From contig JAAPAO010000331.1 of the NCBI GenBank assembly GCA_013115145.1, forward strand, positions 1 to 38,544: a stretch of DNA of 38,544 nucleotides, read 5' to 3'. The notes under the pieces were generated by a model, which saw only the letters and a program-made list of their open reading frames with translations, had not been told where the DNA came from and did no database searches. A program made the position numbers and the translations under genes. Origin of the DNA: Perkinsus chesapeaki ATCC PRA-425. Its lineage: Eukaryota; Protista; Perkinsozoa. Positions 216 through 28,030 of this stretch are shown here, one piece after another (position 1 is the first letter of the stretch; every line of letters starts with the position of its first letter).

Positions 216-358
216 ATCCGATCATCGGATTCCGATGCTACATCATCAGTACGCTATCAATACTCCGCATCTGAAGTTCGGATTCCGAACTTCCGATCGG
301 CGCCCCTGTTCATAGGGCCTATGAACAGGCCGAGGGGCCTATGACATAGGCCGTACGT
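216..358. repeat. Cluster of 1-nt-centred palindromes / 22-nt fold-back scars
   Basis: 216-237 ATCCGAT-C-ATCGGA-T-TCCGATG is a perfect 7-1-6-1-7 scar of the 8-mer ATCCGATG. 273-293 is a 10-bp-arm palindrome and 305-329 a 12-bp-arm palindrome. 337-358 is a scar with 2 mismatches. Confidence 0.9.
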
Positions 359-886
359 TCCGCCGTATTTCTGGAAATATTCTGCCCTTTCTAAGACACC
401 CTGTCACTCCATTTCTTTGTGTTTTTCCGATGAAACCACCAAGACCTGGCGATATCACTGGAGAGATGGTTAATGGTATCAATGTGAAGGAAGTCTTAGC
501 CATGATTGCGACGATAACGATAGCGTCAAGGAGAATAGCGACAAGGACGATATCGACATCCCAAGCGGTGTCGAGGTGAATAAAAATAGCGGCGATAGTT
601 CCCTATTCACTACTTATATAAAATCACCTCCAGCAAAAAGTCCAAGTAAGGCAATAAACCTTACCGCACCAAATCTCAGCCTGAAAGGTTCGGAGCGACC
701 TTCCCCCCTTCGCTGCCGGGACCAGTGACCTTAGCTCAGTCTCATGCGACAAAGCCGCTCGATGCTGCTATTTCATCTTCTCAGCTTACAGATAGGGCTC
801 GCGCCTTATCGTACAGAGAATACTACGCAAGGGCGTTTATCATTGACCATCATATTAAGACTGCGAGTGGCAGTGTGAGTTAATCG

Positions 887-927: not shown

Positions 928-1274
928 TTGAGTCCCGTGGTTGGTCAACGTATATCTGGAGCTTTTCTCATGTTGAACGAGAATCGTATTAAATCTAACC
1001 GTCGAGAATGGTTCTGAGGGGAACAATGATTTTCCCCGCCGGTGGCCCACCCAAGGCACGCGCCTCACATACAAACAGGACTATGCGATATCGAAGTTCG
1101 TGGCCGGCGAAGTTGCCTATGTCCGACATAGTATGTCGTTGCTGAGAGACGCCTGGTACCTTCAAGGGGAAACAAGGCCTGGAGCAAAGCCTTCAGGGTC
1201 TGAAGTTCAGACTAGGTATGCTGTGAGATTACACTTGTCCAATGAAATGTCTGGGAGCTTTCTTGAGCGGGATC

Positions 1275-1296
1275 CGCTCCCCGGGAGCGGCTCCCG
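1275..1296. repeat. Perfect 22-nt fold-back scar (8-mer CGCTCCCG)
   Basis: CGCTCCC-C-GGGAGC-G-GCTCCCG. Confidence 0.9.
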
Positions 1297-1634: not shown

Positions 1635-1979
1635 ATTACAGACTGTAATTTACTGTACCTCAGCTGTAATTACCTCGTGAGTCACGAGTCGTGACACGTT
1701 GAACCTGTCAGGTTCCCAAACCTGGCTCACCTCGTGAAGCTCACCAAGTAGAGTCTATTGGGTAGATTGGGACCGACTCGGTCCGACCGAGTCATCCTAT
1801 TTGGGTGGTTCCGGTATACATCTCCATCACACGGCCATGCGCCATCAACCAGCCAGCCAGGGCGCCTGGGCCCTGAGCCCTTATTGAGTAAGCTAGCGAT
1901 GAGTCTACGATACCCGCGAGATAACTGATGATAACCGATGTTACTTTCGGTGACTTGGTCATAGTCTATGACTCATAGA
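1635..1979. repeat. Cluster of 22-nt fold-back scars
   Basis: 1635-1656 (ATTACAGT, 1 mismatch), 1674-1695 (CTCGTGAC, perfect), 1701-1715 single fold, 1770-1791 (GGACCGAG, perfect), 1958-1979 (GTCATAGA, perfect). Confidence 0.9.
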
Positions 1980-3143: not shown

Positions 3144-6135
3144 CGTGATTGTCGTCACGGTTTTGATTTTCGTGGATTTGAATTATTGTATCTCAGATTA
3201 TCCTCCACATACTACTCCTGTTGATGTCATTTTTGGTATCTTGGAGCACCTTCCTTCAGCAGTTTGGTTTGCTTGGGATGGCCTGCCGAGACGGATCCCA
3301 AGTGGTCTGTCTCGGAATACTGAGATTCGGTAATGAAGGAAAACGTATTTATTCATCATCTTCGTTAGCGTCTCTCCTCGTCGTTCGCCTGCCGAGATTG
3401 ATATCAGCGTTCGAGTCTGAAGAGCCGATCAACTATGATGGATTTCAATTGACGATCCACTCTATGATTTCGGCTTGGTTATATGTCGCAGTGCTGAGGT
3501 AGTAATTGGTAACTGTTCGATGCTCTCTTCGTTCATATATTCTACATTTGAGCTCGTTTGATAATAATGTGATAATAGTTGAATTTTCTACCGGGTAACA
3601 TTGCAGGAGGAATTCATCTATTTTGACTCCTGAAAAATATCCGAACAAATATTTATTGAAGTATCTGTATTGTAAAAATACGTTATGTGACAGCATTTTT
3701 TCATCACCATTGCCTCCGCCTATTAGCGACGAACTTTTGACCGCCGGGGAGTAGCTTTCTGTGAGGCTAGATGAACACAGGAATTGGTTTTAGGCGTTTT
3801 TTTCAAGATACGGTGTACAACTAGGTCGAGCTAAGTATTATGATCCTGAGATATGGGTTAAGTGCGCAGCCGGAAGATTTTGAAAGATACGCCTGTTCTT
3901 CTTCTTCCTCATGATGATGATGATGGCATGCTGTGCTAAGTGACTGTATTTTCCACAAATGATTGTTGCTCTGTTAGTAAGTCGAATTTTGGGATTGATA
4001 TCCAAATTCAGGCTATTGGGACCAGAACAGAGGGCGGAAAATGAGGGGGCCGAGGCGGGTTCATTTTTATTGCTGACCAGCGCAGCAGGAGGAATCACTC
4101 CATGGAATAGCGCCAAATATTTCTAGATTGAATTTGAAGCTTGATTCGTTCTCCCCGCAATCGAGCATCAGCAACCGCTTGTGGCTAAATGATTCCCTGT
4201 CAAGATCGGACACCTTTCCTTAGCCAATTCTGGTTCATCCATGCCTATAGCAGCATCTTCTTCGGTAGTAGCATTCTATCACCCTCAGGTGGAAGGGTCT
4301 TTACGGTTGGCGGATACAACATGGGTAGTAAATGGGGAATAATGCGACATTGGTGTAGAGCACTAAGTCGGAGAGATTATCGAGGCAGTTGTAGCGATTC
4401 TGTGGAGTTCTCTGGGCGATCCATTACTCTCGCGTGAAAAATCCGATGAAGGAAATTTCAACATTATTAATCATGCATGAATTAGTTAATTTATTGAACT
4501 ACTCTGAGAGTATATATTATATAGAACTGAAAGAAACGGGTTTAAGACAAAAAGACTCCGGGCGAGTGGGTCTGGAGGACATGGACCATGTCATAGATGG
4601 TCAGTTAATAACTAACAACCGTATTGTTGAATAACTGTCAATCTCTGTCCAAGGGTCACAGAATCGATTAACTCGTTAGACTGAGATATTTGGCATTAAG
4701 ACCTTATAGTCTACGGGAAAAATGCAGCCACAAGCCGGACAAGTTGTTTATCAGTACTCGACAAATCTTCGGGGTTCCTCTCCTGCATGCATAACCTCGT
4801 AATCAGGGCAATGGCAAGCTATTAGATGATGTTAAAGTCGGTGGTCCAGTTCGGGAAGCAGGAGTAAGTGGCTCCAGCTACCTGACGTGGACATGTGAGA
4901 ACTCATTGATTTGTGGATCGGAAGGTAATATCGGGAAAGGGTCAGAGTCGGTCTGCTCAATTCGATTCGTACTATTATCGGCTTTATTAAATTTATCGTC
5001 TTTATTACCCTTATACACCAAAGTACTCTTTATTTCATTTTCCTGTATATTTCGTTCTTAGCGCGTCCCTCCCCGGGATAGAGTCTTCCTACCGGTTGCG
5101 CTCTCCCCATTCAGGTTGCTCTGGGTTTATAAGCTCTACGAATTTAATAGCGCGGAAATCAATTTGTTGCTGTCAGAATGCCTTTCGATATAGTAAAGCT
5201 GGTTAACAGTTTTTTACTGGTCATATTTCGCCTGTGTCGTCTGTCGAGATTTTTGCGTCTCACCCTGCGGTCAGGGAATACGAGCCCTTTTCATTCTCGC
5301 CAGTGGGAGTCTTCCACCTTCACCGTATCGCTTCGTGAAAATCGAAGTCCAGCAAAGTTTTGCGGAATTGTTATGATTACTGTAGATGACACTGCTATGG
5401 AATTTGCTCATCGAACTATCCGATTTCTCTCGAGTTCTTATACGGCTTGTCTTTACCAACTTTTCCTCTGTTTCAGGTACAGCATTTGAAGTTGCGCACG
5501 AAGCGCTTGGCGAGGTAGTATCGGCTGGGGAGATTTTTTTCGGGGGAAATTGAGTTTTCTATTTCTTAACAACTGTTCTCGAGAATTTTGATTGTCCAAC
5601 ATTGCACGTTTGGTTCCAGCGACCTTGCGATCTGGTAAGGGAGGAAGCCGATAGACATCCGATGTGGGCATAGTCTAAATTGACACTTTTTGCGCTGGGC
5701 CAGTGCCACTGGCATTTGCTATGATGAGGAGCTTTGGGCCCCAAAGCGTCTGTCGGCCTGCTCTATAACACACCTATTCGCCAAGATTTAGCTCTAAAAT
5801 TGGTATGTGGTATCTATCAGAGGTGAGTAGTACCAGATTTTGTATTTTACATTCCTCGGGGAGGTTCATACTGTTGCCTTAATCAACGCGGATTGATGGG
5901 TGAAAAAAGCTCAGGAGAAACTTCTTGTGGATTTACTTGGTTTTCATGGTCCTCGTCCACCTGGGCCATCACGCGCGTTCAGTTGCTCAGTAGTGGAATA
6001 TTACTAATAATAAATCTTGATTATACTTTCATCATAGTGATGAGTGATTTATTAATGTTGAATTCTATCAGTGTGTTCATCTTGAGTAATAAATGCTCAA
6101 TGATACGCAGTTAACAAGTACAGTCAAATCCTTCG

Positions 6136-7689
6136 TTGAGAAGATTTCATACTGAAGAGGCCGCTTGGTGTCCGCAGGTGCAATCAAGGGCAATTAAGGC
6201 GTTTTCGGACACCTCTGACATCTGGACGCTCCCCGATGGCCGTCTTCTATCGTCCTCACGGAGCTCGGGGGTTCGGATATTTCCTCCTTTTCCCAGCTGG
6301 GGGTCATCAGCATCGACGAGTCCGCAAAGCACGTTATCGATCCACGCGGCTTCGGCGGTTTGTGGCACCTCGGACGGGGGTAACATTTTATGGGGGACGG
6401 AGTCGGGATGTGTTCAACTGGTGAAAATTGAAGAGCTGGATGGGCCTCGATTTGAGTGGAAGATTGATGGGGTTAATGTTGGCGTGGCGTCGCTGAGGTG
6501 TACGGAGATCGGAGGGGGTAGCAGCTTCGCGGTGATGGCAGAAGACTGCAGCGTGCTCGTTGGTGATGTGCATGCGTGCGGAATTTGGAGCTACAAGATT
6601 CCATCGGAAAGTGAAGAAAGGATCGATCGATTGTCGTCGGATTTGGTGGCGCCCTCGCCGTGTAATGAGAGTCTGTTGGTTGCGGCGATCGGGCCGAGTA
6701 GGGCTATTCGGTTTGCGGATGTCCGACAGAAGAAGGCGTTGAAGGATCTTAGGTTGAAGCTTGCACCGAGCAGCGTATCGTTGCGGGCGGATGGGGCATT
6801 TATGGCAGTTGGATCGGAGGAGAGCGCTATCGTATATGATTTGCGGTCGCTTAGAAAGCCTGTTGTGGTTTATGAGAATACACCAGCAAGGAGTGTGGCA
6901 TTTTATAGGGAACATCATTATGAAAAAGAAGTAATAAATTTATTAGGTGGGTTTCAATAGATTACAACTTTTATGAGAAGGATAAAGTAAATATATAAAG
7001 GACTCCAAAGTTGTATACAGGCTAAATTAATTATAATGTGATTGAGATACTTTGCTGAATTGATCGGGATATTATCATTAACTGAGATCTCGCAGATTGG
7101 GATCTTTGTATTTACTAGCATAATTAAGTGTTTAATATGAAGCCTCATCACACGTTCGTGCGTTGTCGTTAGTTCGACGATCGTTTAAGTCGCCTTCCGT
7201 TCGATAGTGATCCTCGCTCAGGAGCCACCGAGCCCGAAGTCAACTCCACGCGGAAAGCAAAGTTCCAATGTGAGGTCGATGACGCCTCACACGCAAAGAC
7301 TCGCAGGAATGTTACGAAGAATCGGTGGAGGGTTGAACAAAACTACCAGCGATGACGTCACCGCGGTTTCGAGCAGATTGGGAATAGTTTCGAGGATCGA
7401 TGATGAGGAGGGTTCGAGAAGCATAATGGGCGAAAATGAGGAAGATGGCGAGAGTCATTTCGAGGAGAGACGAGGCTCGCAGGCGTCGGCGGGGGGAGTT
7501 AGTTTGAGAAAATTAAGTTTGAATGGAAACGGGAGCGATGCGGACATGGAAGGATTGATTTCGACGTTGAATAGGATGCATGTTGAGACCATTGGTAAAT
7601 TGAGTTATTTGGAGATGAGACAGAGAAAGATGGAAGAGACGTTGGAGAGGATTGTTAATATGTTATCATTACAGCATGAGAAAAAATAG
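6136..7689 (+). CDS. NEDD1: WD40-repeat protein with C-terminal coiled coil, NEDD1/GCP-WD-like (at least 2 exons: ~6136-6930 and 7222-7689; true 5' end unresolved)
   Basis: Segment SPCNESLLVAAIGPSRAIRFADVRQKKALKDL...SLRADGAFMAVGS..AIVYDLRSLRKPV resembles the last WD40 blades of NEDD1. A phase-0 GT(6931)-AG(7221) intron joins it to a Ser-rich linker ending in a helix (ISTLNRMHVETIGKL...), like the gamma-tubulin-binding tail. Recognised from memory of the family, not by search. Confidence 0.65.
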
Positions 7690-9377
7690 CCTTTTTAGTC
7701 TAGAGGTTAAGGGTTGTGTTTAGTAAGCCAAAGGTCCTCGGATCGATCCCTGGTTGATGCATTTCTCTGCAAATACGCATTTTGTGATAGTTGCGTTTAA
7801 AAAATATTTTGTCCAACATGGTGTTTCATCCTCCCGTTGTCCTGCCCTCTTTTATTAATCATGCTGAGTGACCTGAGCGAGATGTCTCTATTAGTGCACT
7901 CGCAATTTACTCTTTTCCTAGAGAGCTTACGCCGCGGCGATGTGGATTTCGCATAATTACAAACCTATGTAATAGGTTTTTTCTTCAGGCGCAGGGGTTG
8001 TTGGGATTGTTACCTTTTGCTCCTCAGTTTTTTGCATCTTGCCTGCACAAAGTCAACTGTATTGACTACACATCAATAAGATGTTTGAACTCGTTCCGAT
8101 ATATGTAATCGTTTATGCTCATCCGACTCGCTCTGATGCCCATGGGTTAGTAGCCCAGGTTTGTTCCTTAGTCTTTCGCACTTTGTCTCTTTGATAAAAC
8201 CAACCCGATGGCTTGAGCGTTGAAAAGCAGTTCTGCTGGCTCTTGTGACCCGACCGTTGAAAATCCGGCCATACGGGGAGGTCTGCTCGCCTGATCACGT
8301 TTCCTATTACATTTGTGATCCTCAATAGATCACGATATTAACTCCTTTCCTGGTTCACCATCGGCTCTCTGGAATGCTGTTTTGAAAAATCTGAAATTAA
8401 GACTTCTTTGAAACCGTTCTTTGGGAGCCGTTGGTTGCTTCTCTATGACTGCCTGCCTCTATAAGCGTTTTTATTATTCGTTTTACTGTCCACAGAATAC
8501 TGTTAATAATGTAGTTGATTGAGCCAAATTATATTTTCATTAGTAATGTTCGATCCAACTTCGTCGCTGGAACGAAAGCGTCCGAGGGATGAGCACGGTA
8601 ATAGGGGTCTGCTGGGGGGAAATGAAATGCCACGGGCTTGTTTATAAACTGGTTGAATAAACGTCACTACCTCGTTGCGAATTGTTATTAGGAAATGAGC
8701 TACTCGCTGATTGGGAGGTTATTTTGATAGGTCATGAGTTTGCCAATTTGGTTTCCAATTTACTAGTGATACTAGCTCTATCTAGTGGTCGGGAAATTTA
8801 TAGTAAATTTATATAGTATAGATTGCCATAAGCCATGATCATACTGATATAGATAATGGCTATAACGTAATACAAGTTTCATCGTTACCACATAAACTTA
8901 CCGACAAGACCAAATCTAGCGGTATTGATAATATATAAGACATAACTTATTTTTATTATTCATTTTTTTACTACAAATATGATTACCAAGTCTACGGGTC
9001 CTTCACCCCCAGAAGCTGAAACGTGCTCAGAAGGCCTTAGCCCGACAGCAATCAGGGAAGCGTCTGGGTTGGCAGGAATTTGTCTCCCGAGTGTCAGAAA
9101 TGTTTCCTAATACGGTGGAAATTCTGACAGAATTATTTTCCTAGACTGCTAGGGAGACGTCAACTGGCCCATTCCTTCCGGTCGGCCTGATATCTGACTG
9201 TTGAATGCTCCTTGAATGGTAGTGTAACAAGCGCCAGTTTACCGCGTCAGTTGAACTACAAAGAATATGCCCAACAAAAAACGCAGATGGAAAACATGTT
9301 CACCCCGGGGATTATACTTCTGATGGAAAAGGGATAAAAATTTTTACGTCAACATATGAATTCCTGATGATGGTGCA

Positions 9378-12300
9378 TTGAGTACGATCGTTGGTTGTTG
9401 TTGTTGCCCAGGTCCAAATGGTGGTGTGGCACCTGGGAGCAGTAGTGGTATGCTTCCTGGTCGTTATCAAGCTGCTATATCTTGTCCGGGTGTGGCTGTT
9501 AAAAAAGTTATACAACATTTGCCGGAGATTCAAGCGCAGAGTAGATGTGTTGTCCATGTGGATCATAATGAAAATGCGGATGGTGGAGGTGAAGAGGATC
9601 AACAACAGCAACAACAGCCGAGGACCCTAAAATTGGCTACCAGTAATAGAGGCAAATCGATCATGAACTGTTCCTCATCACACGCGGAAATAGTCGTCCA
9701 GTAGACCGTCGGTATGGCAAACGGGTTCGTATTCTTCTCCATTAGTAGATCTTTGGAAGCCGTAGTTCAACCTCGAAAGGGGAGGGGCTGCATACATTTC
9801 TTAGGGGCTGTATTGAACTCTCCTGCGTGTGCCGGATCAGCCCAGCGTTAGATAAATTAGCTAGCAGCGGGGAGAGGTACAGAAAGCTTTAGTGAATTTA
9901 TCACTGTCCGAAATTTCAAATGACGATTTCAATGATGCGGTATAAGAATCGTTGGATTCAAATTTGACACTAATCACTTTTGGTTGTTAAAGTGTCTTCC
10001 CGGGGTAGTAAATTTCCGTGGGGGTTATGGTGTGATCTATGCTTGGTTAGCTGAGCTCTATATGACGGTTTAATGATTAATAAGACTTGCAACCAAACAC
10101 CGTCTATCTTATGAAGTATGTAACATAATAACAGCTACCATAATAACGTAACCACTTATATGAATGAGTAATACTGAAGCTACTAGCGTGACGCTAAAAT
10201 ACTAAGCCGACACCACAATGAGTCATACGTCATGCACAAAAGTAGACAGATCAATGAACTGCTGAACCCAGCATACCATCGCCCACTTGAGATGACTCAG
10301 TACCGCAATAGTAATAAATAATGAATCTTTAGTATTATCCCAATAATGAACATCCTTGAATAATTTCACCGTGCTTTATTAATATTATATATATGATATT
10401 GTTTTTGTTGTGTAGACACTCAAAGTTGCTTGGATGACTGCCGTAATAGGATACATGAGTACATATCGGCGGTGTTATCGGCACATAGAGGGGATCTACC
10501 AGATGGCTATGAAAGAAGGGTAGTAGTCTGATAGGGAAGGATATGGCTGAAATTGGGGAGACTAATGCGGAAATTGAGGCTGAAATAAGGAAATCTCCGT
10601 CAGAAAATGCTAATTTGAGGATACAGTGGAATTCTTGGCAGGGAATATATATGTCTAGACCAAAGGGAAAGACCAAATGCAATCTTGGGGAAGTTTGATA
10701 TCACTCTGGCATTATGGATGGGTCCTCGAAAATCGCTGTGGTTTGTTAACCTATATTATATGACCAATATATTAGTGCTTATGAGTTTTAATATATTATC
10801 ATAGTATGAACATGTTTACAGCTACTATATATATTCCATCGCTTGAGTAACTAATAGTTGTCACTTGACTCAAGGTTTGCTTCATCAGACCTTAACTATC
10901 CCAGAGTCGAGTGTCGGATCAGTAGTAGGCCCCCGAGGGGCAGTTATAAGAGCGATCCAGAGAGACTCGGGAGCAAAACTTGACATTGCCCCGAGGCAGG
11001 AGAGGACGTCCGGTGGGGACCAGGAGCTGACTTTGGTCGGAGGAACGGATCAAGTCGCTGCGGCGGTGTGGATGGTTCACGATGTTATGGAAGGGCAGTA
11101 TAACGTCGACGCTGCGCTTTTGCAGCAGGAACAGGATAGAAGGGCCAAATCGATTGCGAGCGGCGGCGGTGGCGGAGGGACGCAGACAAGATGGTACGGA
11201 TCTAGGCATGCGGTGGATCCGAGCATTAAGGAGAAAAGAGTAGGCGGAAATGCGGTAGTAATTAGTAGTTGGGTTTCAGGTTATTTATGTACCGGTGGAG
11301 CACGTGGGGAATTTGGTGGGACCGAAGGGGGCGGTGCTGAGAGCGCTACAGCTTGACAGCGGAGCGAAGGTGGATATGGAACGTAACGATGGTGGATGTC
11401 GTGGCCGGGCGCACGTGTGTCTTGGAGAACTTGTTCGAATTATGGGTTAAGAATTATTTAGTTAATATTTAGTTTATTATTAGGTATTATATGTTAAGAA
11501 TCTGTGATAGGAATGATTTGAAATTTGATCATAAGAATCTTTAAAAATCTGAAAGTAATGTATTTTCTGTGATGTAGAGGTACTCTGAGGAGGATCTCGG
11601 GAAGTCGGAATTGGGAGTTTGGAGTTTTGGGAAAGGTTTATTGATCCGAGATTAGTGGACTAATTACGGACTCGGTTGGCATTGGAGCAAGTATTGCTGG
11701 TCGTCCAGCAGTAGAAAGACATTCCGGGCTTTATGGCAATCGGATTTTGCAAAACACGACAATGAGCGAGCTCCATGTCGTTCGTTGGGGAGGCCTGGTC
11801 TTCGGGGGATGGTGAAAATTGATGATAATTCATCACCAATCATCGTGGATAGAATATGAGTGTAGAGGGGGACAAATTACGCCGCGGAGAGAAGTGTTGG
11901 ATGGTGCTGCATAGAGCGGATCACTCCGAGACGTTCTGCCATATAGATGAATATCCTCGTTTCAGCTGCGCCTTCAGCTGGCAGCGACAGCGCTCGAGAT
12001 CCCAGAGCTTTGACTATTTCTGGATTGAGTCCACAAGTGTCTGTTGGTTATGATATGGCGATGTCGGTATTAGAAGGAACGTACGATATTGGGAGAGCTG
12101 TTGAGAGGGCTGGAGGGTAAGCGGCGCCTTCAGGCAATTAAATTCGCCGTTAAATGGCGTTGGTTTCAATTATTACTAATAATGTGTGCACTATCCCATT
12201 ACGGACAGAGTAGTCATTGTAACACAACAATGCTAGGTTGGGCTGATAGTTAAGTAATGGTTAGAATATCATGAGTTGTGAAAGCTAGTAATAAGATGGT

Positions 12301-13940: not shown

Positions 13941-14190
13941 CAGCTGTATGATGTGTCACTGAACCAGCTGCAACTGTACGAAATGGCCCTGAACGAGCGG
14001 CAACTGCACGGAATGGCACTGTATCAGTTGTAACTGTACCTAACAAAGTTGTACGGAATAATACTGTATCAACTTGATAGTATCAAGTTGATACTATCAA
14101 GTGCAACGAGACGAAATATTACTATACCAACTAATGCAAACATAGTTGGAAATGGACGGTTTGTCACTGTACGAGCTGCAACTGCACGGT
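13941..14190. repeat. Degenerate 30-bp minisatellite
   Basis: CAACTG(T/C)ACG(A/G)AATGGC(A/C)CTG-like units at exact 30-nt spacing (13941, 13971, 14001, 14031), with a further copy near 14165-14190. Confidence 0.75.
14066..14101. repeat. Compound fold-back scar with five alternating arms
   Basis: G-TATCAA-C-TTGATA-G-TATCAA-G-TTGATA-C-TATCAA-G; contains a perfect 22-mer at 14073-14094 (CTTGATAC). Confidence 0.9.
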
Positions 14191-14691: not shown

Positions 14692-15875
14692 TATCAAGAC
14701 TTGATAATCAAGTAGTTACATTCATTCAATGCACTAACATATAATTGCACCTCAGGCCCTGAAGGTCAGTGCGCATAGATTGACTTCAATCACAGGCTGA
14801 TTAGGAAGGGTATAATATATGATATTATCATAATGATAATATGATGATCATATCGACGAGACACCAATCGACTAGTTATCAGCAAATGCGAGCATACTCT
14901 CTCAAATCCGAATCGTTGAACGTGATCGAGCTATCAAGGTAGTTTTTGCGTAGCTTCGCATACGTGAATGGGCTCCTTCGTGTGCGCAGTGCATCGTAAT
15001 AGATCGAAACCGGAATATCTCTTTCCGTCTGGGCACGTATGCATACCTTCCATCCCGTCGAATGCTATGATAGAATTGCTATCTTAGAGATAGCAACTGC
15101 GTCCGAGCGCGTCCGCCTGGCGTATGAGTCATACGGTATGACGCGCCACGTGTCTAGGGAAAGTCAGCTCGAGTCACGCAGGTAGTAGTGGAGCTGGATA
15201 CATAAGCAACAACTAACACCATCGATGATATTATCATTGGTCTGCGACTGTATGTGATGTACAGAAGCCGCTACGATAGCCACTGAATCTATTTTATCAT
15301 CTACATCTGCATCTACCATAACACTAGCTAAATCAAAAAATCCGTCTAAAATGTCCTCTACTATTTCGTAACTATTAGATAATTCAATTGTAGCACCTCT
15401 CAAAATTGCGTCAATTTCATGTTAGTTTCCTCGAATGCAGGTCACACAAAGCGGCAGCTGAGCCGGTATCAGTGAGCGGCTCACTTTGAGCCCGTAAAAT
15501 AAATTTTCCTCTAGAGAGCGTTGCATGCTCCATAGCGCTTCCGACACGTCTGGGGTTACAGCGGCATCAGCTGAAGTATCTTGTAGTACTCTCGTTCACT
15601 CTTTCACATCGTCTAGAGAGATTCGATCATCGCATCACGTTACGATCCCTGCGATGCATTACAGGCCAGTTAGCTCGGCGCGACATATCCCTCCTCGCGA
15701 AACTCCGAAAATGCGCAGTAGCTCGCATTGCAAGCCTTACGAATGGAAGTCATGGATTTGTTGGATAATCCAAGTAGGACTCAGGACATCTCTGGATTCA
15801 AAGCAGATTCAAGCCTGACACTGTCACGCTGACAGAGAATGTCTGCGCTCTGACAACGAACTTCGTTGAACGAAG
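14692..15875. repeat. Dispersed 22-nt fold-back scars
   Basis: Perfect: 14692-14713 (TATCAAGT), 14818-14839 (TATGATAA), 15121-15142 (CGTATGAC), 15854-15875 (CAACGAAG). One mismatch: 15471-15492 (AGTGAGCC). Confidence 0.9.
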
Positions 15876-16207: not shown

Positions 16208-16808
16208 ATGCCATTTTTAACTCGTCAAGTTAAAAATGGCATCACACCCCAAAATTTGGCGCCTAGACCGGGTAAAGTGCGAATCCCAAATTGACCGTCG
16301 ATCAAATGGGAAAGCAGATCGGACGTTAAAACCGGTTCGAGCCTCGAACCGGGAGCCCTCGAGTTTCGAAGAAAATGCTCTGCGGGCTAGACATAGAGCG
16401 GCTGGGTAGACATAATCTTATAACCTGGTTGCCTGATGCACGTCGAAGCGGGTCACAAACCCGAGGTTGGTACTTCACAGTATGTGCAAAACCCACTGGT
16501 AATCGGGGAGTGGCTGGAACATATATCCATCCTGTCACACGAATCCTGTGTCAATAAGCAATGCTAAGCATTGAATGCCCATCAGGGGTCCCGCGATAGT
16601 CAAAGGACGTCGTCCTTTAACCGGCACCAGAAGCGTGAAATTGGCATACTGGCAGTATGATACCGCATTGCAGTAACTGCAACGCATTACGCACTCCAGC
16701 AGCTGGAGTCCACCTCATGGCCTTTCACTGGCTGCCCACTAAACTTTAGTGACTAAAGTAGACTACTACCTTCTCCACAGGGCCGGGCTAACAATGTTAG
16801 CCTAACAT
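16208..16808. repeat. Dense cluster of palindromes and 22-nt scars
   Basis: 16208-16242 15-bp arms with 5-nt loop; 16332-16352 10-bp arms; 16559-16580 (2 mm); 16602-16618; 16645-16666 (1 mm); 16668-16682; 16694-16715 (1 mm); 16737-16758 (CACTAAAG, perfect); 16787-16808 (GCTAACAT, perfect). Confidence 0.9.
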
Positions 16809-16827
16809 TCGTTGCCGAACGACTCGT

Positions 16828-17045
16828 GCGGGTTTGGTGCATTAGATAGCTGAGCTACCTACTGCACCAAACCGTCACGCTATTATCACTATTATCACGC
16901 AAACATAATGAAATGACATTATGTGATGTATACCGCTTGGTGGTGTAAATCAAATGTCATGATCACTCCAAGGACGGCCAAAATGGGCTTGTAGGCAGAG
17001 TTCGGGTAGCCAGATCTTCGAACCGCACGGCCAAACTGATTACAC
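16828..17045. pseudogene. Destroyed copy of the tRNA-Met/tRNA-Leu cassette
   Basis: The first ~23 nt of tRNA-Met (GCGGGTTTGGTGCATTAGATAGC) are followed by their inverted copy. The cassette spacer (AAACATAATGAAATGACATTATGTGATGTATACCGCTTGGTGGTGTAAA) is intact. An 85-nt segment then keeps only the two ends of the Leu tRNA (TGTCA... and ...ACCGCACGGCCAAACTGAT). Confidence 0.85.
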
Positions 17046-17177: not shown

Positions 17178-17382
17178 CGGTGGTCACCACCGGGTGGTGC
17201 CGCCACCATAAGGCCACGACCCTTGCTTGACATGCAAATCAGCGGCCGGTTACTGCGACTCTGTGGGAGGCACCTCACAATATGAACTCATATTAGTCGT
17301 ATTATACGACAAGTGGGCCGGTAGTCCAATCACCTCCGCCATAGGTAGTCAGGTGGCCTAGGCAACAGTGTTGCCGCAACAC
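17178..17382. repeat. 22-nt fold-back scars
   Basis: 17178-17199 (CGGTGGTG, perfect), 17296-17310 single fold, 17361-17382 (GGCAACAC, perfect). Confidence 0.9.
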
Positions 17383-17397
17383 TGTCACCACTAATTC

Positions 17398-17606
17398 ACG
17401 TCATAATATGCAGCCCAATCTCTACGAGAGGAAAGGATTGGAACAATTTCAGAATAGGCCGACATCCACTAGGGATGACACAGGACAGACAAATATGGAC
17501 AGAAGAGAGCCATAACTAAAGAGGCATCCCCGACTCAGCCACAGCGAGTTCACAACAGAAACTGCCAGGCAGGGCGGTCAGTCGCACCGTGACACTGTGA
17601 CCGTGT
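17398..17606 (-). pseudogene. Decayed duplicate of a hexosaminidase intron/exon junction (paralogous to 22740-22920)
   Basis: Aligns with 22748-22919. On the minus strand, ...CGTAG|A GAT TGG GCT GCA TAT TAT GAC GTG (DWAAYYDV) matches DWAAFYDV in the main gene and is followed by a stop. Confidence 0.8.
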
Positions 17607-18041: not shown

Positions 18042-18063
18042 ATTTGCAGTGCAAATTTTGCAC
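18042..18063. repeat. Perfect 22-nt fold-back scar (ATTTGCAC)
   Basis: ATTTGCA-G-TGCAAA-T-TTTGCAC. Confidence 0.9.
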
Positions 18064-18671: not shown

Positions 18672-19487
18672 CTCACTTCAGCTGCTCTCATGGGCTTTCA
18701 GAAGCCTAACGTTCTTCGACTATCAAAAGATCGAGACTCATTTATCGAGCAGCCTTGGCAGGGGAGTCATCCAATTCATCAGCCGCGATGGCAAGTCGAC
18801 GTGGTGCTACATTTTTTCCAGTAAAACTTGTTATTGTTTTGTTATTGGAGAGTAACAAATCAGTGTCATGTCGAATGAGTGACTCAAACTCCGAACCGAC
18901 GTGCTTTGATTTCATCCCAACCTCTCGAGTGAGCGCACCCTAATTTCACTTCGACACACTTCGTGTACCGTGCTATGAATCCCCTCAACGTATCCAGCAG
19001 GGCCGCTAGAAGCCATAAGCGGGGTGCGAGGACCGACGGATCGCTAAAGGAGGTAGATTCTAGCTCCATCACCAAGTAGGAGCTTTCGGCTTCTACCAGA
19101 CATGAGCCATGTAAGCACTGCTATTTAAGCTGACATTTGTGTAGGTGGATATATTTGTGGCCCAATTCGGCATATAGTTGGGGGATTGAGATTAGTTTTA
19201 CTGTTAATCTACGTTACACTATGTCCAAGTATTGTTATCCCACTACTGTATGCAATGAAATGAGCACATTGTCATAGGAACATCGTTTCATGCAGTTTGT
19301 TCACAAATATTAAATCAGAGAACAGTCGTACGAAAATTTGGTGGAGACAACATGCCGATGAACAGCAAGCTGTTCGGCATCACGAGGCAGAACTATAAAG
19401 TCACTGCAAGCAGGCGATGATCCGCTGTATCGAGTCGTCATCGGAGTTTCCCTAGGGCTCTAGCTTACGTTTCGCTGGCACAGAAAC

Positions 19488-19663
19488 ACCGCTACTAGCG
19501 GTCCGCTAGTGTGACGTTATCAATGATAACTTATCATGGACCTTTTTTTGTTATTCGGACAGCCTTTTCTCACAGTAGAGATATTTCTATTAGGATAGAA
19601 TTAAGGCAAACGTGAAGGCCTGATTAGTTATTAACTAATTGATTTTCTTAGGGGTAACCCCTA
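19488..19663. repeat. 22-nt scars and 1-nt-centred palindromes just upstream of the tRNA cassette
   Basis: 19488-19509 (ACCGCTAG, perfect), 19516-19537 (GTTATCAT, perfect), 19623-19639 and 19649-19663 single folds. Confidence 0.9.
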
Positions 19664-19815
19664 CCGCGAGATTGATGTCCCTATTCGCGAAAATGATTGC
19701 CTTATTCGCCAAAAATTTGTGGCCCTCAAACGCGAAATAGATTTCTGAAAAGCATAGTATACCAATATTCCTAGAATATTAGTCTCCAAAGGCTGAACTA
19801 AATTTTTGTCATCGA

Positions 19816-19888
19816 GCGGCTTTGGCGCAGTAGGTAGCGCGTAGGTCTCATAATCCTAAGGTCGCGAGTTCGATCCTCGCAGGCCGCA
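19816..19888 (+). tRNA. tRNA-Met (CAT), elongator type
   Basis: 73-nt cloverleaf; anticodon loop CT-CAT-AA; T-T at positions 31-39; TTCGATC T-loop; G1-C72, so not the initiator. Confidence 0.97.
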
Positions 19889-19952
19889 CTAATATATCAA
19901 ACATAATGGAATGACATTATGTGATGTATACCACTTGGTGATGTAAAGTTAA

Positions 19953-20034
19953 TGTCAGCTGTGGGATTCGAACCCACGAGGATCTCTCCACCAGAACTTG
20001 AGTCTGGCGCCTTAGACCGCTCGGCCAAACTGAC
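19953..20034 (-). tRNA. tRNA-Leu (CAA)
   Basis: GTCAGTTTGGCCGAGCGGTCTAAGGCGCCAGA-CTCAAGT-TCTGG..., long variable arm, GGTTCGAATCC B box, no intron. Confidence 0.97.
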
Positions 20035-20279
20035 TACACTCAGAACGCATCGCCAAGCACTTGGATTTGGTACTATTCATGTCATCAAGAGGCATCATTC
20101 AACAACACATTAGTACCACGCCATGGCAACCATTATTCAATACGCCAAACTAAGCTTCGTTCAAGCTGCGAACAAGAGTAGTTTTCGAACCAAAAGCCAA
20201 CCAACAGGTTGCGTAACCATGTCAGTCCACCCATGTGGCACGCTAGCAAATAAACGACCCGTCTTAGTGCACTGCCTGA

Positions 20280-20301
20280 CTACTACAGTAGTAGTACTAC
20301 C
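20280..20301. repeat. 22-nt fold-back scar (1 mismatch)
   Basis: CTACTAC-A-GTAGTA-G-TACTACC; low-complexity, so weaker evidence than the others. Confidence 0.65.
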
Positions 20302-20343
20302 CTGGCCTCGAGAAGCACCAAAATGCTGAGTGATGTTGTCCAA

Positions 20344-20430
20344 TGTTAAGTGCTGTAAAGTACCTAACATTAGACTACATCACTTAACATTTTGTAGTCT
20401 AATGTTAAGTACTTTATACAGCACTCAACA
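20344..20430. repeat. Long imperfect inverted repeat (~37-bp arms, 13-nt loop)
   Basis: TGTTAAGTGCTGTAAAGTACCTAACATTAGACTACA ... TGTAGTCTAATGTTAAGTACTTTATACAGCACTCAACA. Confidence 0.85.
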
Positions 20431-21526
20431 GTGTAAATGTATTTTGAAGAGAGCTGGACCGGTCACCGAGAATTGCGGTCCGCAAGGCAAAGCACCAGTG
20501 CAATGCACTCTGCGGATTGTACCACCACACCGTTTCGAGTGTTCGTTCAACAAACTTCGTTGATCTACCGTATAATGCAGTAGACCACAGCTTACAGGAG
20601 GAAAGACACCGGTTGTTCACCAAAATCGAGTCGAACGAGTTCTAACCAGAGTTCTGCAGGTTATTGAAAGATACTTCCACCTTACGAGGTGGAATACCTT
20701 ACAACACGACTTGTATATCCCAGCCGTCACTGTGCGTGTTTCGGATGCTACTTGTGTTGTAATTGGCCGATTGTTTCATTGTCCGTTATCGTTATTAGAC
20801 GTCAGTTGCACATAGAACATGACGAACACAAGAAACAAAATTAATATCAGAAATAGGCGATTTCAAGATTTCTTAAAGCGTTCAAATCCAATCTGCTTTC
20901 ACATAGTTTCATAAACTGGATACACGTCGACGCCGGTTGGAACGTCCCATTCTGGACACCACCACTGATAGTCGGTGAGGTTGAATCTAAAGAGCGAGAA
21001 AAGGACAGTAACTCTAGGAGAATCAAGATCGAACAAAGTACAGTAGTCTCGAGTAGAATATTATATCGCAGTTAGGGCAATTCAATTAACTGCGGTATAC
21101 AACGAGATAAACGATACTGTCGGTATCATACTGAACACACTGTCAGAAAAGAAAACCGGAAATCCGTCACCGGCAGTCTTTTTCAACTCGTAGTTAGGTC
21201 AGGCTTCAACGCCAAGCTAGTGAAGTTTGTAGCATACATCAGCAATAACCTTCAAGGCCAGACTTGGTGACGGCCACGGCATCTTACATATAGGAGGTGC
21301 TGGGATTGGAGATATCCTTATAGTTGCCAATCGGTGCAATATCGCCGGGGGCGCTGTGACCAAGGACGGCTGCAGAGAGAAAGCAGCGGGTTCTGAAAGG
21401 CAATACGAAGTATTATTATTGAAGCTGTCTGGGAAGCTAGTGTGGACAATGTTAATGATCAACATTAACGATTAATAGTTGATGATTCATTCAGAATGGC
21501 TGATTCTGTATGTAATGCTGAAGCAA

Positions 21527-22227: not shown

Positions 22228-25200
22228 CTGGCCAGTCTATTAACCGCCCATTCATGGTTAAATGGACAGATATCATCCTCAGCACACCATAGCCTCTCCG
22301 CAACAGCAGCAGCTCTGGGCCATACTCGGGGCATGAAGACACTCTCATCAACCGACTCGCCTGCAATGAGGGCAATCGATCCAGAGGAACGTTGGATTTT
22401 TGGGCCCAGAAGGAATGTGTCATTTATTGCTTCCCTTTGGTTGTCTAAAAACGTATTTTCTACCAAATTTCCGTCGTATCTCCTTTTCCGCATTTCTGTG
22501 CGACTAGATGCCCCCGTGGCTCGCTCTGGTTCAGTTTTGCGCATTCTGAATTCCACATCGAATGATTAGATCCAATACGCCACCTGGTTCAACCCGAAAA
22601 ACTTTTCAATTAGCCGCGCACATTTGATGGTTCATTTCAAGACTTGGTCGGCGAATTGAGGAAATAGCGGTATGAGCCTACCCCACATGCAAGCCTCCCC
22701 TCCAACCAAAATGCCATTCTTGTCTCGTTTAAAAGGGACGTCGTAAAATGCAGCCCAATCTCTGAGAAAGGAAATAATAGCTCAGCATCCACTAGGGATG
22801 ACACAAGACAGATAAAAATGAACAGAAGAGAGCCATAACTAAAGAGACATGATGTCTCAGACATCCCCGACTCGGCCACAGCCAGGAACTGCCACGCAGG
22901 GCGGCCAGTCGCACCGTGTGCGAGAATCAGTAACGAAACGTTCTCCATGTTGCGTGGTGAGAATCAATAACGAAATGATCTATGACACCTGCATTTTCTG
23001 GGCGAATCACCAATTTAGTGGCACTAAGTCCAATTTCAAGAGTTTTTCCTTGAAAGATTGAAGGTGGCGAGCTTGAAACATATAATAATATATAGTAGAA
23101 GTACAAGGTTATAAACCCGATTTTATACAATACACCAAATAATCGAAATATACAAACTTACTGCCCAAGTAGATCAAGATAGAAAGCAGAGCTGAAAATT
23201 AAACTTCTGAACTTCCCAGACTCTGCCATCTAAAAACCAAGTTATGAAAGCGATTGTGTGATCGATTTACTCACAGCCAGTGTCCTTGAGGCATCGTACA
23301 GCCAAATCTGCCATGTGTCCACAACATCCGTCTCTGTAGGGTTGTCATTCAGGAAGTCATTCCACAGAATCACAGTTGCTCCTGGAATGCAAATGAATTC
23401 CGATAAGCAATTTTCGGAGACAGGATTTGTGTCGGGGACAATTTTATTGTGCAACGCCAACGGCACGGAAAATTGCTAAAATTTTCTGGTCGGGTTAGAC
23501 TGGGGCAAGCTCGATCCATTGGTGATCGAGTTGGGAGAGTTGGATGAAAGTAATTAAGTTAATTCCTTTTCTACTGTTATTAATTAAGTGCATTAATTAG
23601 CATAAGAATTAACTAATACATTAACTAAGTATTAGATAATTGGATCTCTTCAGCATTTCTAGATGTCGCGCACTGTAATTAATCAATTTAATTATTGAGA
23701 AGACGAATTAGCATTTACCATTAATTTTATTTTATATCAACTATCATCAATTATTTTATGAAGGTAAATATTAATTAACATTATTAATTCATATAAATTT
23801 ATTAAGGTTATTAAGGTTACCTTTTGTATAACTTTTCTCAAGTTCTCCTTTTACAAGTGTTTCAGGAAGTTGTCTGTCCCAACTAACCCGCATGGGTTAC
23901 CTGTTTTCTCTTTAACTTCCTTCACCGCATGAGACAGCCAATAATCGACTAAATCTGTGCGGTTGTGGAATTTGCTAACAAAGCGAGGTAGCATTCAGCC
24001 ATTCAGGTAGGATACTCACCCGTGTTCTTGTGTCCATTTGGTGAGGGCCGCGGAATCCCAGGCATCACCGATTTCGTCACCTCCAAGGTGGAGCACCTTA
24101 TCTCCTGAAAACTGTACTTCCATTTTCGTCAAGTTAGCTAAATATTAATGCGGCAATGAGTTTAGTGATGCTTCATGGAAAAATACTCTATGCACGGCGA
24201 ACTTTCGAGCGGATTGCCGCACTCGATTTTTCATCCAGCACGCCGAGCTTGATTTTTGTCAGGCTCTGTACGATAAAGATCGTCATTAGTTATCGATGGA
24301 CTCATCGAGCTTTACCGTTATTGATTCTTCCGGATGCGTTGTTATAGAAGATATCCACGACCTCGGACATCACCGCGACGGTCATCTCTCTTGTCTTATC
24401 ATTTATGGGGTCCATCCAATACTTGGCGTCACCAGTGAGCCAGGGATATCTGATGACAACAAGGATAAACGGGACACCACCGTGGAGAGGAGGGACTGTA
24501 TTTCGCTCACCCATCGACGCAACACAAAACTGCTTCACATTCGGCGTCCAAGTGAAAAGTTTTGAAAAAGCCTACTTTTTATGACGTGACTGTAAGTCTC
24601 TCCGAGTCTAGCTCGTGAAGATGAGATTGCTACTCGGTTTTACAAACCCGAAACCGAGGGACAATTTTTCCCAAACTAGACTGAGCCATTTTCGGCAACG
24701 GTCCATGGTACGGCTGGTATCAATAGTAAAGGACGACTTCTCACCTCATCTTTCTTAGAGTGAAATTTTATAATGAACTATGAACCGTTTGGTTTTTTGT
24801 ATTTTCCAAACCTATTTGTAAAGGGTTTCAAAACTTCATTGGTCGAGTATTTGATCTGGAATCGGATGAAAAGTTATGGGACACCTTTCACAACGCAATC
24901 CTCTTACCCTCGGAGCCAGCTGGTCGTATGTGCTGGAACGTCAATCTCGGGTATCACTTTGATGCCCAAACGGTTCGCGAATTTCACGACGCTTCTCACC
25001 TCCGCCGGAGAGTAACTGAAGTTGCGTCGCCGACCAGGCGTGAAGTTGGCCTACGAGACAGGTGTGGGGTTCTTCTTCTGAAGGTCGGGGAAGCTATCGA
25101 GCTTCAATGAAAAGCTTATGTCGTCCGAAAGATGCCAGTGAAGGACATTCATCTGAAGAGGGAAGGGGACACTGCCCTTTCTAAAACGCTCGCAATTCTA

Positions 25201-28030
25201 TCAGCCTCGTCCGAGATTTCCGGCGGTGTCGATGCCGCCAGCTATTCTGGAAACTTTATAACAATTCGCTCACACCGTGTTCTGGAAGTGAACATACTTC
25301 AGGAGGGCAGTGTAGTGAGTTCATTAGTGTTTAAATATATGCATGTTCTCGCGGCGAATATGAACTGGCGGAAAAAATAAATTTCGAGATACTTCACAGA
25401 GTTCTTTGCATTAAAGAACATGTTATCTATGGCGATTCGGCGGAGTCAACCGAGGAAGAATCAACCAGAACTAGAATTTATAAAACTGTTGAGCGGGTCG
25501 AAGACTGGCAACCTTGAATCAATCTTCGATGGAGTGGTGGATGGCCCTTATACAGAGAGTTATTGGGGAGCATTAAACGTTCCCAGAAATGATGCATTTG
25601 GTCACCAAATTTTGGTGCTCCTCCAGGCCCTAGGGACCAATTTTCAAACGGAGTTCCTAGTATACAGGGTTTCCGCATTACGAACATCTTTTAGGTTACA
25701 CGTGAGGGTAGATAAATCCATTGTCGTTCGCCGAGCTCACCTTCGTCCAAGCCATAATGATGAGGTTCTTCTCAATGACACTGACCGGGAGATATCTGCG
25801 TCCTGTGTCGATAAGCATCCCCCGGTGATCGAAGGAGGGGTAATCGACGACAGTGAAGCCGTGGTAAAGCAGTGAGAATAAGTCCTCCTTGTGGTTGTGT
25901 GCGATTTGGAACTGAGGAGCCGACAATGTGGATACGGCTATGCCACGACGTTCTCTGATGATCGATATTGATTATGTTCAGTCACAGTGACAGAGTAGAG
26001 ATGTCAATCAATGACTGCCGAAGTTCCCACACCACTTACACCGGTGGCAGCTCCATACAAGAACCCAACTCGTGTGCTGTACTTCATGTGGCATCTCAGT
26101 TTCTCGCAGTTCAGCTCATAGCCTTCCCTCGGCTGCTCACTGTCGTAGACTACGGCGGTCTTTACGGGGTTGCCGCCTGAGAAGCTCGATGTTTGCATTC
26201 TATTCGCCATGTGGCGCCGTAACCTTCTTACAGATTCGATGGCCAAAAATACGGAGAATAATAAATCTATGTTGAGCTAGATACGTAAGGTTTAAGGTTC
26301 ATATACAGGTATAAGATTTATGTGTACGGCTCATACTGCATTGAAGTCAACTGAGTGAGCTACAGGGACTGAAGGCCTAGAAGCCAGTGAATAATCAGCG
26401 GCTTTGGCGCAGTAGGTAGCGCGTAGGTCTCATAATCCTAAGGTCGCGAGTTCGATCCTCGCAGGCCGCACTATTATATCAAACATAATGGAATGACATT
26501 ATGCGATGTATACCACTTGGTGGTGTAAAGTTAATGTCAGCTGTGGGATTCGAACCCACGAGGATCTCTCCACCAGAACTTGAGTCTGGCGCCTTAGACC
26601 GCTCGGCCAAACTGACTACGTGAACAATGAATCACCGCGGATACCGCACTCGCATATTGAGCTTTAGTTTTACGTCATCAACCAACTCTATCTCTCACGA
26701 AGGCGAATGCGCAGCGCAGTGCACCCAAGCAAGCGGTGAACCCTTAAACAACCAGTAGCCCGAAAACTCGAAGCCCAGAAACCGTGCAAAGGGATGGGCT
26801 ATGAGCCCGTAAACTGGCCGCCGCGGCGCGAGGGTGTAAATGACCTTATGGGTTTAAATTGCGAGCATAGACACGCACCCATGTTCGCAACATAAGCTCA
26901 AAGGGTCCAACCTGGGAGAGGAGGGTGGGTCAAAAACGCGGTAGAAAACAAATTATTATGGAATGCATGCACTGCCGCCCCGAACCTAGAAGGACCTTAT
27001 TTTCCTGCAAGTGCATGCACAGCGCACAAGGATTGTGCGCACGTGACCTGCTGACAGCAGGCTGCTGTCCGTGCACGCGTGCCGCAGATTGACGACAACA
27101 ACTAAACTTGTCTACTTCGTAAACCTCACATATTCTACTGTGTTGCACACTATTATAAGGAAGAACAATGGATATAAGTGTGACCGTGACAGCAAGCGTT
27201 CGACTCATGGCATGATTCGACGTTGGACGTAAATATGACCCTTCGAAGACATCCTAGGCCCTCCTAGACATTCTGAATGCCTGGGTTCGGCATGCTCAGC
27301 GAATAACTAAGCATCGACAGTTTGGCCGAGTGGTCTAAGGCGCTGGCTTAAGGCGCCAGTCCGAAAGGGCGTGGGTTCGAACCCCACAGCTGTCAAAGCT
27401 ATTGCAGCTTACTTTTCTGCTTGTACAAAGTCTTCCTCACAAAATCTAGATCTTCCTGCACCACTGGACCATTCGTTGAGCCTTTCCTCTCCGTCGATTC
27501 CTTTCCAAGATAAAAATCAAAATAATATTCACCATCGTTGAAGATATCTACAACGAAGCATGGTCAAAGATGCACCAACGCCGACGTTGTTTACTCTGAA
27601 CTTTCGGGTTAATCTTCATACTCTTCGGAACTGGCCATACGAGCAGTTCCGGTTGAGGAGGGACACTCGCAGCAGCGACTCTGATACAAGGAGGTAGTTG
27701 GATTGCAAAGAATTCGGTGGAGCGAATTTTTCGTTGAGAACGCACGAAGTTGTCGCAAAATCAAATTTCTGCCAACAGATTTGCTTCGCCCAAATGTTAA
27801 CCAACTCGATGCCTATCCTGCAAGACTCAACCAGGAATACTTCGAGAAGTGTGAATGACGATAAGAGATTCTTATCAACAATTTACGTTGCTCAGGTTGT
27901 CTAATGCATGATAGATTATTCGGAGGTCGAGAGTATCCGTGCTCAGATTGACTCCAAGAGCAGAAAATGTAAAGTTCCTCGAGACTTACATAATCGTCAG
28001 GAAGCTCGCAATGATATTCCTGCTCGGCAT
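22228..28030 (-). CDS. Beta-N-acetylhexosaminidase (GH20), secreted, about 13-14 exons identified; one in-frame TAG at 25051-25053; terminal exon(s) unresolved (possibly ~21217-21340)
   Basis: Spliced exons give: signal peptide MPSRNIIASFLTII (28030-27990) | VAAASVPPQPELLVWPVPK (27680-27595) | ... EGYEL..RVGFLYGAAT | DYPSFDHRGMLIDTGRRYLP | MNVLHWHLSDD..IKVIPEIDVPAHT (25152-24907) | LHLGGDE (24104-24020) | VILWNDF | SSAFYLD | QDWAAFY..VGGEACMWG (22761-22682) | ESVDESVFMPRVWPRAAAVAERLW (22360-22228). These are canonical GH20 motifs in order, with compatible intron phases where checked. Confidence 0.93.
22844..22865. repeat. Perfect 22-nt scar (GAGACATC) in a hexosaminidase intron
   Basis: GAGACAT-G-ATGTCT-C-AGACATC; the paralogous position 17521-17528 has only GAGGCATC. 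Confidence 0.95.
26398..26470 (+). tRNA. tRNA-Met (CAT), copy 2, intronic in hexosaminidase
   Basis: Identical to 19816-19888. Confidence 0.97.
26535..26616 (-). tRNA. tRNA-Leu (CAA), copy 2, intronic in hexosaminidase
   Basis: Identical to 19953-20034. Confidence 0.97.
27047..27068. repeat. Perfect 22-nt scar (CCTGCTGT) in a hexosaminidase intron
   Basis: CCTGCTG-A-CAGCAG-G-CTGCTGT. Confidence 0.9.
27316..27395 (+). tRNA. tRNA-Leu (AAG), intronic and antisense to hexosaminidase
   Basis: GACAGTTTGGCCGAGTGGTCTAAGGCGCTGGC-TTAAGGC-GCCAG...GGGTTCGAACCCCACAGCTGTCA; the 7-nt loop gives anticodon AAG. Confidence 0.95.

Follow-up and report, generated by a model that had tools for sequence, protein, structure and literature searches.

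What writes the same inverted 22-nt arrangement into non-coding DNA again and again, each time from a different 8-mer? The question is raised by a 38,544-nt contig of Perkinsus chesapeaki ATCC PRA-425 (assembly GCA_013115145.1, contig JAAPAO010000331.1, positions 1 to 38,544 of the forward strand), hereafter called the window. An initial annotation had described a series of such "scars" and proposed that they are excision footprints of hAT transposons, a group that duplicates 8 bp of target DNA. The scar series is real and stronger than first stated, it recurs in other Perkinsus genomes, and hAT excision is its probable source.

Scar geometry and abundance

The window was scanned exhaustively for the template X1-7 + revcomp(X1-8) + X2-8, where X is a local 8-mer and the 22-nt product carries 14 pairing constraints. 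Forty first-order (Markov-1) shuffles served as controls. Twenty-two perfect scars were detected and none in the shuffles. These include all 19 starts reported in the initial annotation, each of which matches the template, and three more at 1117, 25596 and 34962. The 22 scars derive from 22 different 8-mers, as had been claimed for the shorter list: the rule is common to all, the sequence is not. X1-7 and X2-8 flank every scar, as they would if both copies of an 8-bp target duplication were kept, and the two palindrome centres within each scar are the complements of X8 and X1. The perfect scars, with two related features discussed below, are as follows.

216..237, strand., perfect scar, X = ATCCGATG (scan)
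1117..1138, strand., perfect scar, X = CTATGTCG (scan; absent from the earlier list)
1275..1296, strand., perfect scar, X = CGCTCCCG (scan)
1674..1695, strand., perfect scar, X = CTCGTGAC (scan)
1770..1791, strand., perfect scar, X = GGACCGAG (scan)
1958..1979, strand., perfect scar, X = GTCATAGA (scan)
14066..14101, strand., nested scar chain of 36 nt (22+14), outer X = GTATCAAG, inner X = CTTGATAC
14073..14094, strand., inner perfect scar of the nested chain, X = CTTGATAC (scan)
14692..14713, strand., perfect scar, X = TATCAAGT (scan)
14818..14839, strand., perfect scar, X = TATGATAA (scan)
15121..15142, strand., perfect scar, X = CGTATGAC (scan)
15854..15875, strand., perfect scar, X = CAACGAAG (scan)
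16737..16758, strand., perfect scar, X = CACTAAAG (scan)
16787..16808, strand., perfect scar, X = GCTAACAT (scan)
17178..17199, strand., perfect scar, X = CGGTGGTG (scan)
17361..17382, strand., perfect scar, X = GGCAACAC (scan)
17521..17528, strand., empty 8-mer GAGGCATC, in a paralogue of the segment with the scar at 22844
18042..18063, strand., perfect scar, X = ATTTGCAC (scan)
19488..19509, strand., perfect scar, X = ACCGCTAG (scan)
19516..19537, strand., perfect scar, X = GTTATCAT (scan)
22844..22865, strand., perfect scar, X = GAGACATC (scan; +14 nt relative to the paralogue at 17521-17528)
25596..25617, strand., perfect scar, X = ATTTGGTG (scan; absent from the earlier list)
27047..27068, strand., perfect scar, X = CCTGCTGT (scan)
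34962..34983, strand., perfect scar, X = GGTGGGAG (scan; absent from the earlier list)

Scars with one broken constraint were also frequent (n = 16), as were those with two (another 16). The one-mismatch scars start at the following positions.

269, 887, 1191, 1466, 1635, 1694, 5692, 13741
14066, 14080, 15471, 16645, 16661, 16694, 17834, 20280

Six of the seven one-mismatch sites named previously are among them, while the seventh, at 17585, has two mismatches. Counts at 0/1/2/3/4 mismatches were 22/16/16/26/49 in the window against 0/0.03/0.13/1.7/13.6 in the shuffles, and 65 distinct scar loci were present at three mismatches or fewer.

Unit length and palindrome centres

The unit length was varied in the window from k = 4 to 13, with end offsets of 0-2, and compared with shuffles. 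Above k = 5, the only enriched combination was k = 8 with offset 1/1 (22 observed, 0.0 expected); k = 6, 7 and 9-13 showed zero enrichment at any of these offsets, and some combinations at k = 4-5 modestly exceeded the shuffles. The earlier statement that no equivalent series was seen at another unit length stands above k = 5.

Palindromes with a 1-nt centre were strongly over-represented (arm 7, 52 vs 2.3; arm 8, 15 vs 0.6; arms 9-15, 13 vs approximately 0.2), whereas those with 0- or 2-nt centres occurred at chance level in the window, in line with the earlier remark that comparable even palindromes were not seen. Exclusive 1-nt centres fit a covalent hairpin offset by 1 nt better than they fit a loop closed by base pairing. 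Most odd palindromes with an arm of at least 7 nt (65 of 80) lie inside scars of two mismatches or fewer, so the 22-mer prevails and is not simply one form of several. The other 15, which stand alone, were inspected for adjoining remnants of a target-duplication suffix and none was found. A family of shorter footprints, with n+m<8 inverted nucleotides, was sought in the window and was unenriched.

A palindromic target-like consensus

The scarred 8-mers share a preference for particular bases at particular positions. Using 34 distinct X from three species, symmetrised, we obtained the palindromic consensus S-T-Y-n-n-R-A-S, in which S1/S8 reached 76% (p 7e-7), T2/A7 46% (31/68 symmetrised positions, p 8e-4) and Y3/R6 about 71% (a tally from the counts, given without a p value). 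T2/A7, or nTnnnnAn, is a hallmark of the targets of Ac/hobo/Hermes-type hAT elements, and the scar consensus carries it. A palindromic target preference is expected of a dimeric transposase and not of polymerase error.

Scars are 14-nt insertions into a single 8-mer

In six independent comparisons of paralogues or alleles, a scar corresponded to a single 8-mer plus exactly 14 nt. Within the window, two paralogous segments (82% identical) differ by exactly 14 nt, with GAGGCATC at 17521-17528 in one and the GAGACATC scar at 22844 in the other. The remaining comparisons used contigs of other Perkinsus species, referred to by locus number. In P. olseni, AGCTGGAG is scarred in L001 (1121) and L003 and is a single 8-mer in L002, and CAGTCCGG is scarred in L004 (6563) and L008 and is single in L001. 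Two P. marinus copies of a hAT element, L009 and L006, are 96% identical; scars at L009:10447 and L009:11485 are absent from L006, and two of the four indels of at least 4 nt in their well-aligned stretch are scars. Finally, one unit of a 1.38-kb tandem array in P. olseni carries a second +14 event nested in a scar common to all units. A scar confined to one transposon copy or one tandem unit is the derived state, hence the scar is the insertion.

The site of CAGTCCGG has a third, complex allele in L002 (approximately 3870-3935, allelic to L004:6563), which combines an inverted copy of the left flank with the start of a scar. This allele, which is only partly parsed, may represent another outcome of repair there.

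Two nested scars were observed, the chain at 14066-14101 in the window and the following one in P. olseni.

L004:20854-20889 (20861), nested scar, compared with sister tandem units

Successive centres are C,G,G,C in the window chain and T,G,A,C in L004, and in each the new centres complement the two end bases of the middle 8-mer. Replication slippage of 14 nt was considered for these chains and rejected, as it predicts the wrong centre bases (C,C,C,C and T,C,T,C). The centres instead match a second run, hence nested scars fit a repeat of the same process on the middle 8-mer. Both reuse exactly the same 8-mer.

The tandem array itself (L002:11500-21309 and L004:15200-21400) has the WD-like gene on one side and the KH-domain gene on the other; where the window is syntenic, it contains no such array. 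Three identical scars recur in all array units and are hence older than the expansion of the array.

Scars in other Perkinsus genomes

A WD-repeat-like protein is encoded in the window; among named relatives, the closest comes from P. olseni (63% identity), and the window is syntenic with the P. olseni locus that bears the WD-repeat-like gene. The comparison set comprised P. olseni contigs from five assemblies, contigs of P. marinus ATCC 50983 and one Logan contig from a further relative. Scars of the same class are present in several isolates of P. olseni and in P. marinus. A unit-length scan of 68.8 kb of these other Perkinsus loci gave a signal at k = 8 only (11 distinct X vs 0), hence the peak at k = 8 over shuffled controls, proposed in the initial annotation as a check, was obtained in two data sets. 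The Logan contig of the fourth perkinsid (L010), which is nearly all coding, contained no scars. Some scars are the same, and at the same sites, in two isolates, and others are polymorphic; since scars vary among isolates, the process is recent.

These observations bear on whether the scars could be artefacts of sequencing or assembly. Palindromic chimeras are known from some library preparations, yet we regard an artefact as vanishingly improbable, and an assembly artefact in particular is excluded by scars in the assemblies of other species (P. marinus and several P. olseni isolates). The P. marinus ATCC 50983 assembly is Sanger-based. A second Logan contig (9.6 kb, word depth 79), built from a public run, matches window 14000-19841, 5.8 kb with 12 perfect scars inside, without any difference. 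The run may be the source sample of the assembly, in which case the match shows only that the scars are present in the reads. Allelic variation in window 14000-19900 was sought through this contig and none was found. Scars shared by two isolates at the same sites, with others polymorphic, also speak against an artefact.

hAT elements in sister species

The initial annotation had called for a search for hAT transposases and for miniature elements with 8-bp duplications; a hAT family with such duplications was found in P. olseni and P. marinus, and none in the window. The P. olseni element (L004:13963-15145) is 1167 bp long, with a perfect 11-bp terminal inverted repeat, TATAGATGGGC, and an 8-bp duplication, ACTCGGAG. 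L001, L002 and L003 have a clean, single ACTCGGAG at this site, i.e. the site is empty. A longer copy in P. marinus (L006:1057) opens with the same terminus, and its 482-aa open reading frame (ORF) matches Dimer_Tnp_hAT (E 1.4e-7, above the Pfam curated cutoff) and the structures of Hermes transposase (E ~8e-6). No match came from Pfam scans of the individual ORF pieces in the 1167-bp element; its assignment to hAT depends on the full-length P. marinus copy, which codes for a transposase of this superfamily. The genus thus apparently holds a recently mobile hAT family with 8-bp duplications, and hAT is the only element with such duplications in the fetched Perkinsus loci.

All six scars of a 21.5-kb P. 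marinus locus lie within or near the hAT copy (L009:8468-13405). Two of the L009 scars are inside the transposase region, where each would shift the frame by 14 nt. A separate, polymorphic insertion of 121 bp in P. olseni (L004:4467-4587), absent from L001 and L002, has terminal inverted repeats of about 22 bp (GGGGATGTTCAATAGACCTCCC...) and a duplication seemingly shorter than 8 bp, and is probably a miniature element of another superfamily.

A model for scar formation

We consider it probable that scars arise by hAT insertion, hairpin excision and in-register annealing of the two inverted target-duplication overhangs. An autonomous or miniature hAT element would insert and duplicate an 8-mer, X, on both sides. 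On excision, the transposase would nick each flank one nucleotide in, and the 3'-OH of the flank would attack the opposite strand, so that each flank is sealed covalently into a hairpin, with the complement of the element-adjoining base at its tip (x8' on the left, x1' on the right). The left hairpin would read L-X1..X7-x8'-x7'..x1'-L', and the right hairpin would be its mirror image. Host nucleases would then open the hairpins away from the tip, on the 3' side, leaving tails of x8'x7'... on the left and X1X2... on the right. Both tails come from one duplicated 8-mer, hence they would be complementary in register. Wherever the openings leave at least nine inverted nucleotides in total, the 3' ends could pair and fill-in would give the same 22-mer, a gain of 14 nt, with flap trimming required for longer tails. 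As any such pair of openings yields the same 22-mer, the model can explain the uniform outcome. The initial annotation had placed the openings about 7 nt from the tip; its annealing product is retained, and exactly 7 nt is unnecessary given that a total of at least nine suffices. Scars would build up at a fairly steady rate and decay through point mutation. In each, the middle copy is the only intact preferred 8-mer, so it can be hit again, giving nested scars. We infer the prior occupation of every scar, the hairpin step, the opening point and the end-joining pathway.

The proposed hAT excision origin is partly supported by the geometry, the exclusive unit of eight, the +14 relation, the hAT elements of sister species and the target-like consensus. 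Several observations weigh against it. The window, with about 65 scars, was searched for elements that combine an 8-bp duplication with a 10-bp terminal inverted repeat, and none was detected against an expectation of 0.4. Neither tblastn with the hAT ORFs of P. marinus nor matching of the sister-species hAT terminus as a pattern returned anything above chance there, and none of the window's long inverted-repeat pairs, when checked for flanking duplications, was convincing. Site states were compared as empty versus scar six times and as empty versus occupied once; a site both occupied and scarred, the remaining pair of the three-state comparison suggested initially, was not among them, and the L007 and L008 contigs (FOZ62, FOZ63) stop before the ACTCGGAG site. 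Four hAT duplications (ACTCGGAG, TTGTAGTT, CTCTCGAT and CCAGGGTA), too few to compare, lack a strong S1/S8 bias. The 1-nt offset of the nick is what Hermes reportedly makes, and it agrees with the Ac/Ds footprint rule. Short footprints with 1-3 inverted nucleotides per side, dominant in plants and fungi, are unenriched here, which would require of the host an unusual and almost deterministic mode of repair: in this lineage, either hairpin opening takes place far from the tip every time, or ends are seldom joined without annealing. The absence of elements beside so many scars is no problem in principle, since scars accumulate whereas a cut-and-paste element does not rise in copy number.

Alternative explanations

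The scars could instead be footprints of another element or enzyme that acts on 8-bp staggered sites with flank hairpins, for example an element of the Mutator-like type or of another superfamily that duplicates 8 bp, or a hAT-like nuclease that has been domesticated and acts repeatedly at preferred 8-mers. The Mutator-like element Muta1 has 8-9 bp duplications and flank hairpins, although its excision is mostly precise (PMC5499845). The window lacks any element, each of the two nested scars reuses exactly the 8-mer of its older scar, which suggests a strong site preference, and the four hAT duplications read do not show the S1/S8 bias that the scars have. Nevertheless we think this unlikely, given that hAT is the sole 8-bp-duplication element seen in the fetched loci and that a palindrome centred on the complement of the adjoining base is a documented Ac/Ds signature (PMC5873905). 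A variant, in which a hAT-derived, possibly domesticated, hairpin-forming enzyme writes scars at preferred 8-bp sites without a resident transposon, is pointed to by the lack of an element among approximately 65 scars, the nested reuse of one 8-mer and the near-deterministic outcome. A nuclease without an inserted element would have no means of duplicating the 8-mer, however, and we hold the variant to be rather improbable. If true, perkinsids would possess an endogenous mutational system producing +14-nt inverted triplications, which would make up a sizeable share of their intergenic DNA.

Scars might also form without any transposon, through a replication or repair error in which the nascent strand switches template and back, or through fold-back synthesis. 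Template switching makes inverted repeats in many genomes, no resident element was found in the window, and chains of palindromes do occur. Still, such errors leave unexplained a fixed 8-nt unit, with k = 6, 7 and 9-13 absent in two data sets, and exclusive 1-nt centres, with 0- and 2-nt centres at chance. They do not predict a palindromic consensus at both unit ends, and expansion of the slippage type gives the wrong centre bases in both nested scars. We therefore consider an origin by template switching or fold-back synthesis quite doubtful.

Comparison with known systems

The chemistry of the scars is textbook hAT. As in the footprints of Ac/Ds, Tam3, hobo and Hermes, the 8-bp target duplication is kept on both sides and inverted (P-nucleotide) copies of the flanks have at their centre the complement of the base next to the element. 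Ac/Ds palindromes are centred on the complement of the element-adjoining base (PMC5873905), and in yeast the arms of hAT footprints reach 20 nt and microhomology is used at the joint (PMC5873905, PMC1978519). Such microhomology joining is a further likeness, although in the Perkinsus scars it is proposed only. In contrast to known hAT footprints, which are heterogeneous and mostly of a few nucleotides, the scars show one dominant product with a full inverted 8-mer and +14 nt; furthermore, known footprints come from experimental revertant alleles, whereas the scars form a repeat class that crosses species.

V(D)J coding joints (RAG/Transib) resemble the scar model in the flank hairpin, off-centre opening and palindromic P-nucleotide additions. 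Hairpins of the RAG type join directly across, however, so even palindromes are expected and no 8-bp duplication, while the scars have one-base centres only. Template-switch (quasi-palindrome) mutations are likewise local inverted copies of adjoining sequence, but their lengths and switch points vary and they have neither a fixed 7-1-6-1-7 geometry nor a target-like consensus. Quasi-palindromes have a variable unit and spacer; the scars have a single unit of 8 and a single spacer of 1 nt. MITEs (miniature inverted-repeat transposable elements) and organelle double-hairpin elements are, like the scars, short hairpin-forming sequences spread across non-coding DNA. MITE-like families share a sequence, whereas each Perkinsus scar derives from its own local 8-mer, and the common copy sequence of a mobile repeat family is absent from the scars.

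A full-text literature search, including Perkinsus-specific queries, found no description of the scar class, and no survey of end-joining genes in Perkinsus was found. Apparently undescribed are the single +14-nt full-inversion product, the genus-wide, sequence-independent repeat class and its use as an excision record.

Distribution of scars and neighbouring features

The excess over chance is roughly flat across 0/1/2/3 mismatches (22/16/16/24). A flat spectrum is the expectation under steady birth and decay by point mutation, and suggests long, continuous activity. Scars cover 18.7% of bases in 1-2000 and 11.6% in 13701-20600, compared with <2% elsewhere, and these two scar-rich zones flank the gene block. 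This clustering is compatible with local hopping or with a preference for open chromatin, and proves neither. Strong positive GC skew (to 0.26) was observed in window 5000-14000, over the plus-strand block that holds the WD-like gene and the KH-domain gene; the scar-rich zones showed no such skew.

A convergent cassette of tRNA-Met(CAT) and tRNA-Leu(CAA) is intact at window 19816-20034, 26398-26616 and 32206-32567 and is present as a relic at 16825-16959, with a lone tRNA-Leu(AAG) at 27316-27395. Dada transposons, which target tRNA genes, have been reported in P. marinus (PMC3706591). The relic contains the following feature.

16825..16879, strand., long fold-back with a one-base centre and 27-nt arms (85% complementary), in the tRNA-Met relic with its 3' part replaced

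This fold-back is possibly a one-sided hairpin product, with deletion, of the scar process. Outside the 22-mer class, the window also has a nested inverted repeat at 20342-20416 (outer arms 16 nt, inner arms 24 nt and 96% matched, core 13 nt) and AT-rich, low-complexity blocks (TATA/AAACTATATA-like) at 32321-32376 and 35522-35785, which form imperfect inverted repeats about 3.3 kb apart.

Implications for perkinsid genomes

Footprints of cut-and-paste transposons are normally small and variable, hence they become unrecognisable later and the long-term rate of transposition is unmeasurable. Should the scars be hAT footprints, past excisions could be both counted and dated in perkinsid genomes, with about one perfect scar here for every 1-2 kb of non-coding sequence. 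The scars would also reveal how this lineage repairs hairpin-capped breaks, by distal opening and annealing with apparently little classical end joining. Excision would then be a directional mutational force that adds 14 nt of hairpin-prone DNA per event, amounting to 12-19% of bases in the two zones, and would disrupt genes, among them that of the P. marinus transposase and, probably, one for a tRNA in the window. Polymorphic scars may in addition serve as strain markers for these mollusc parasites.

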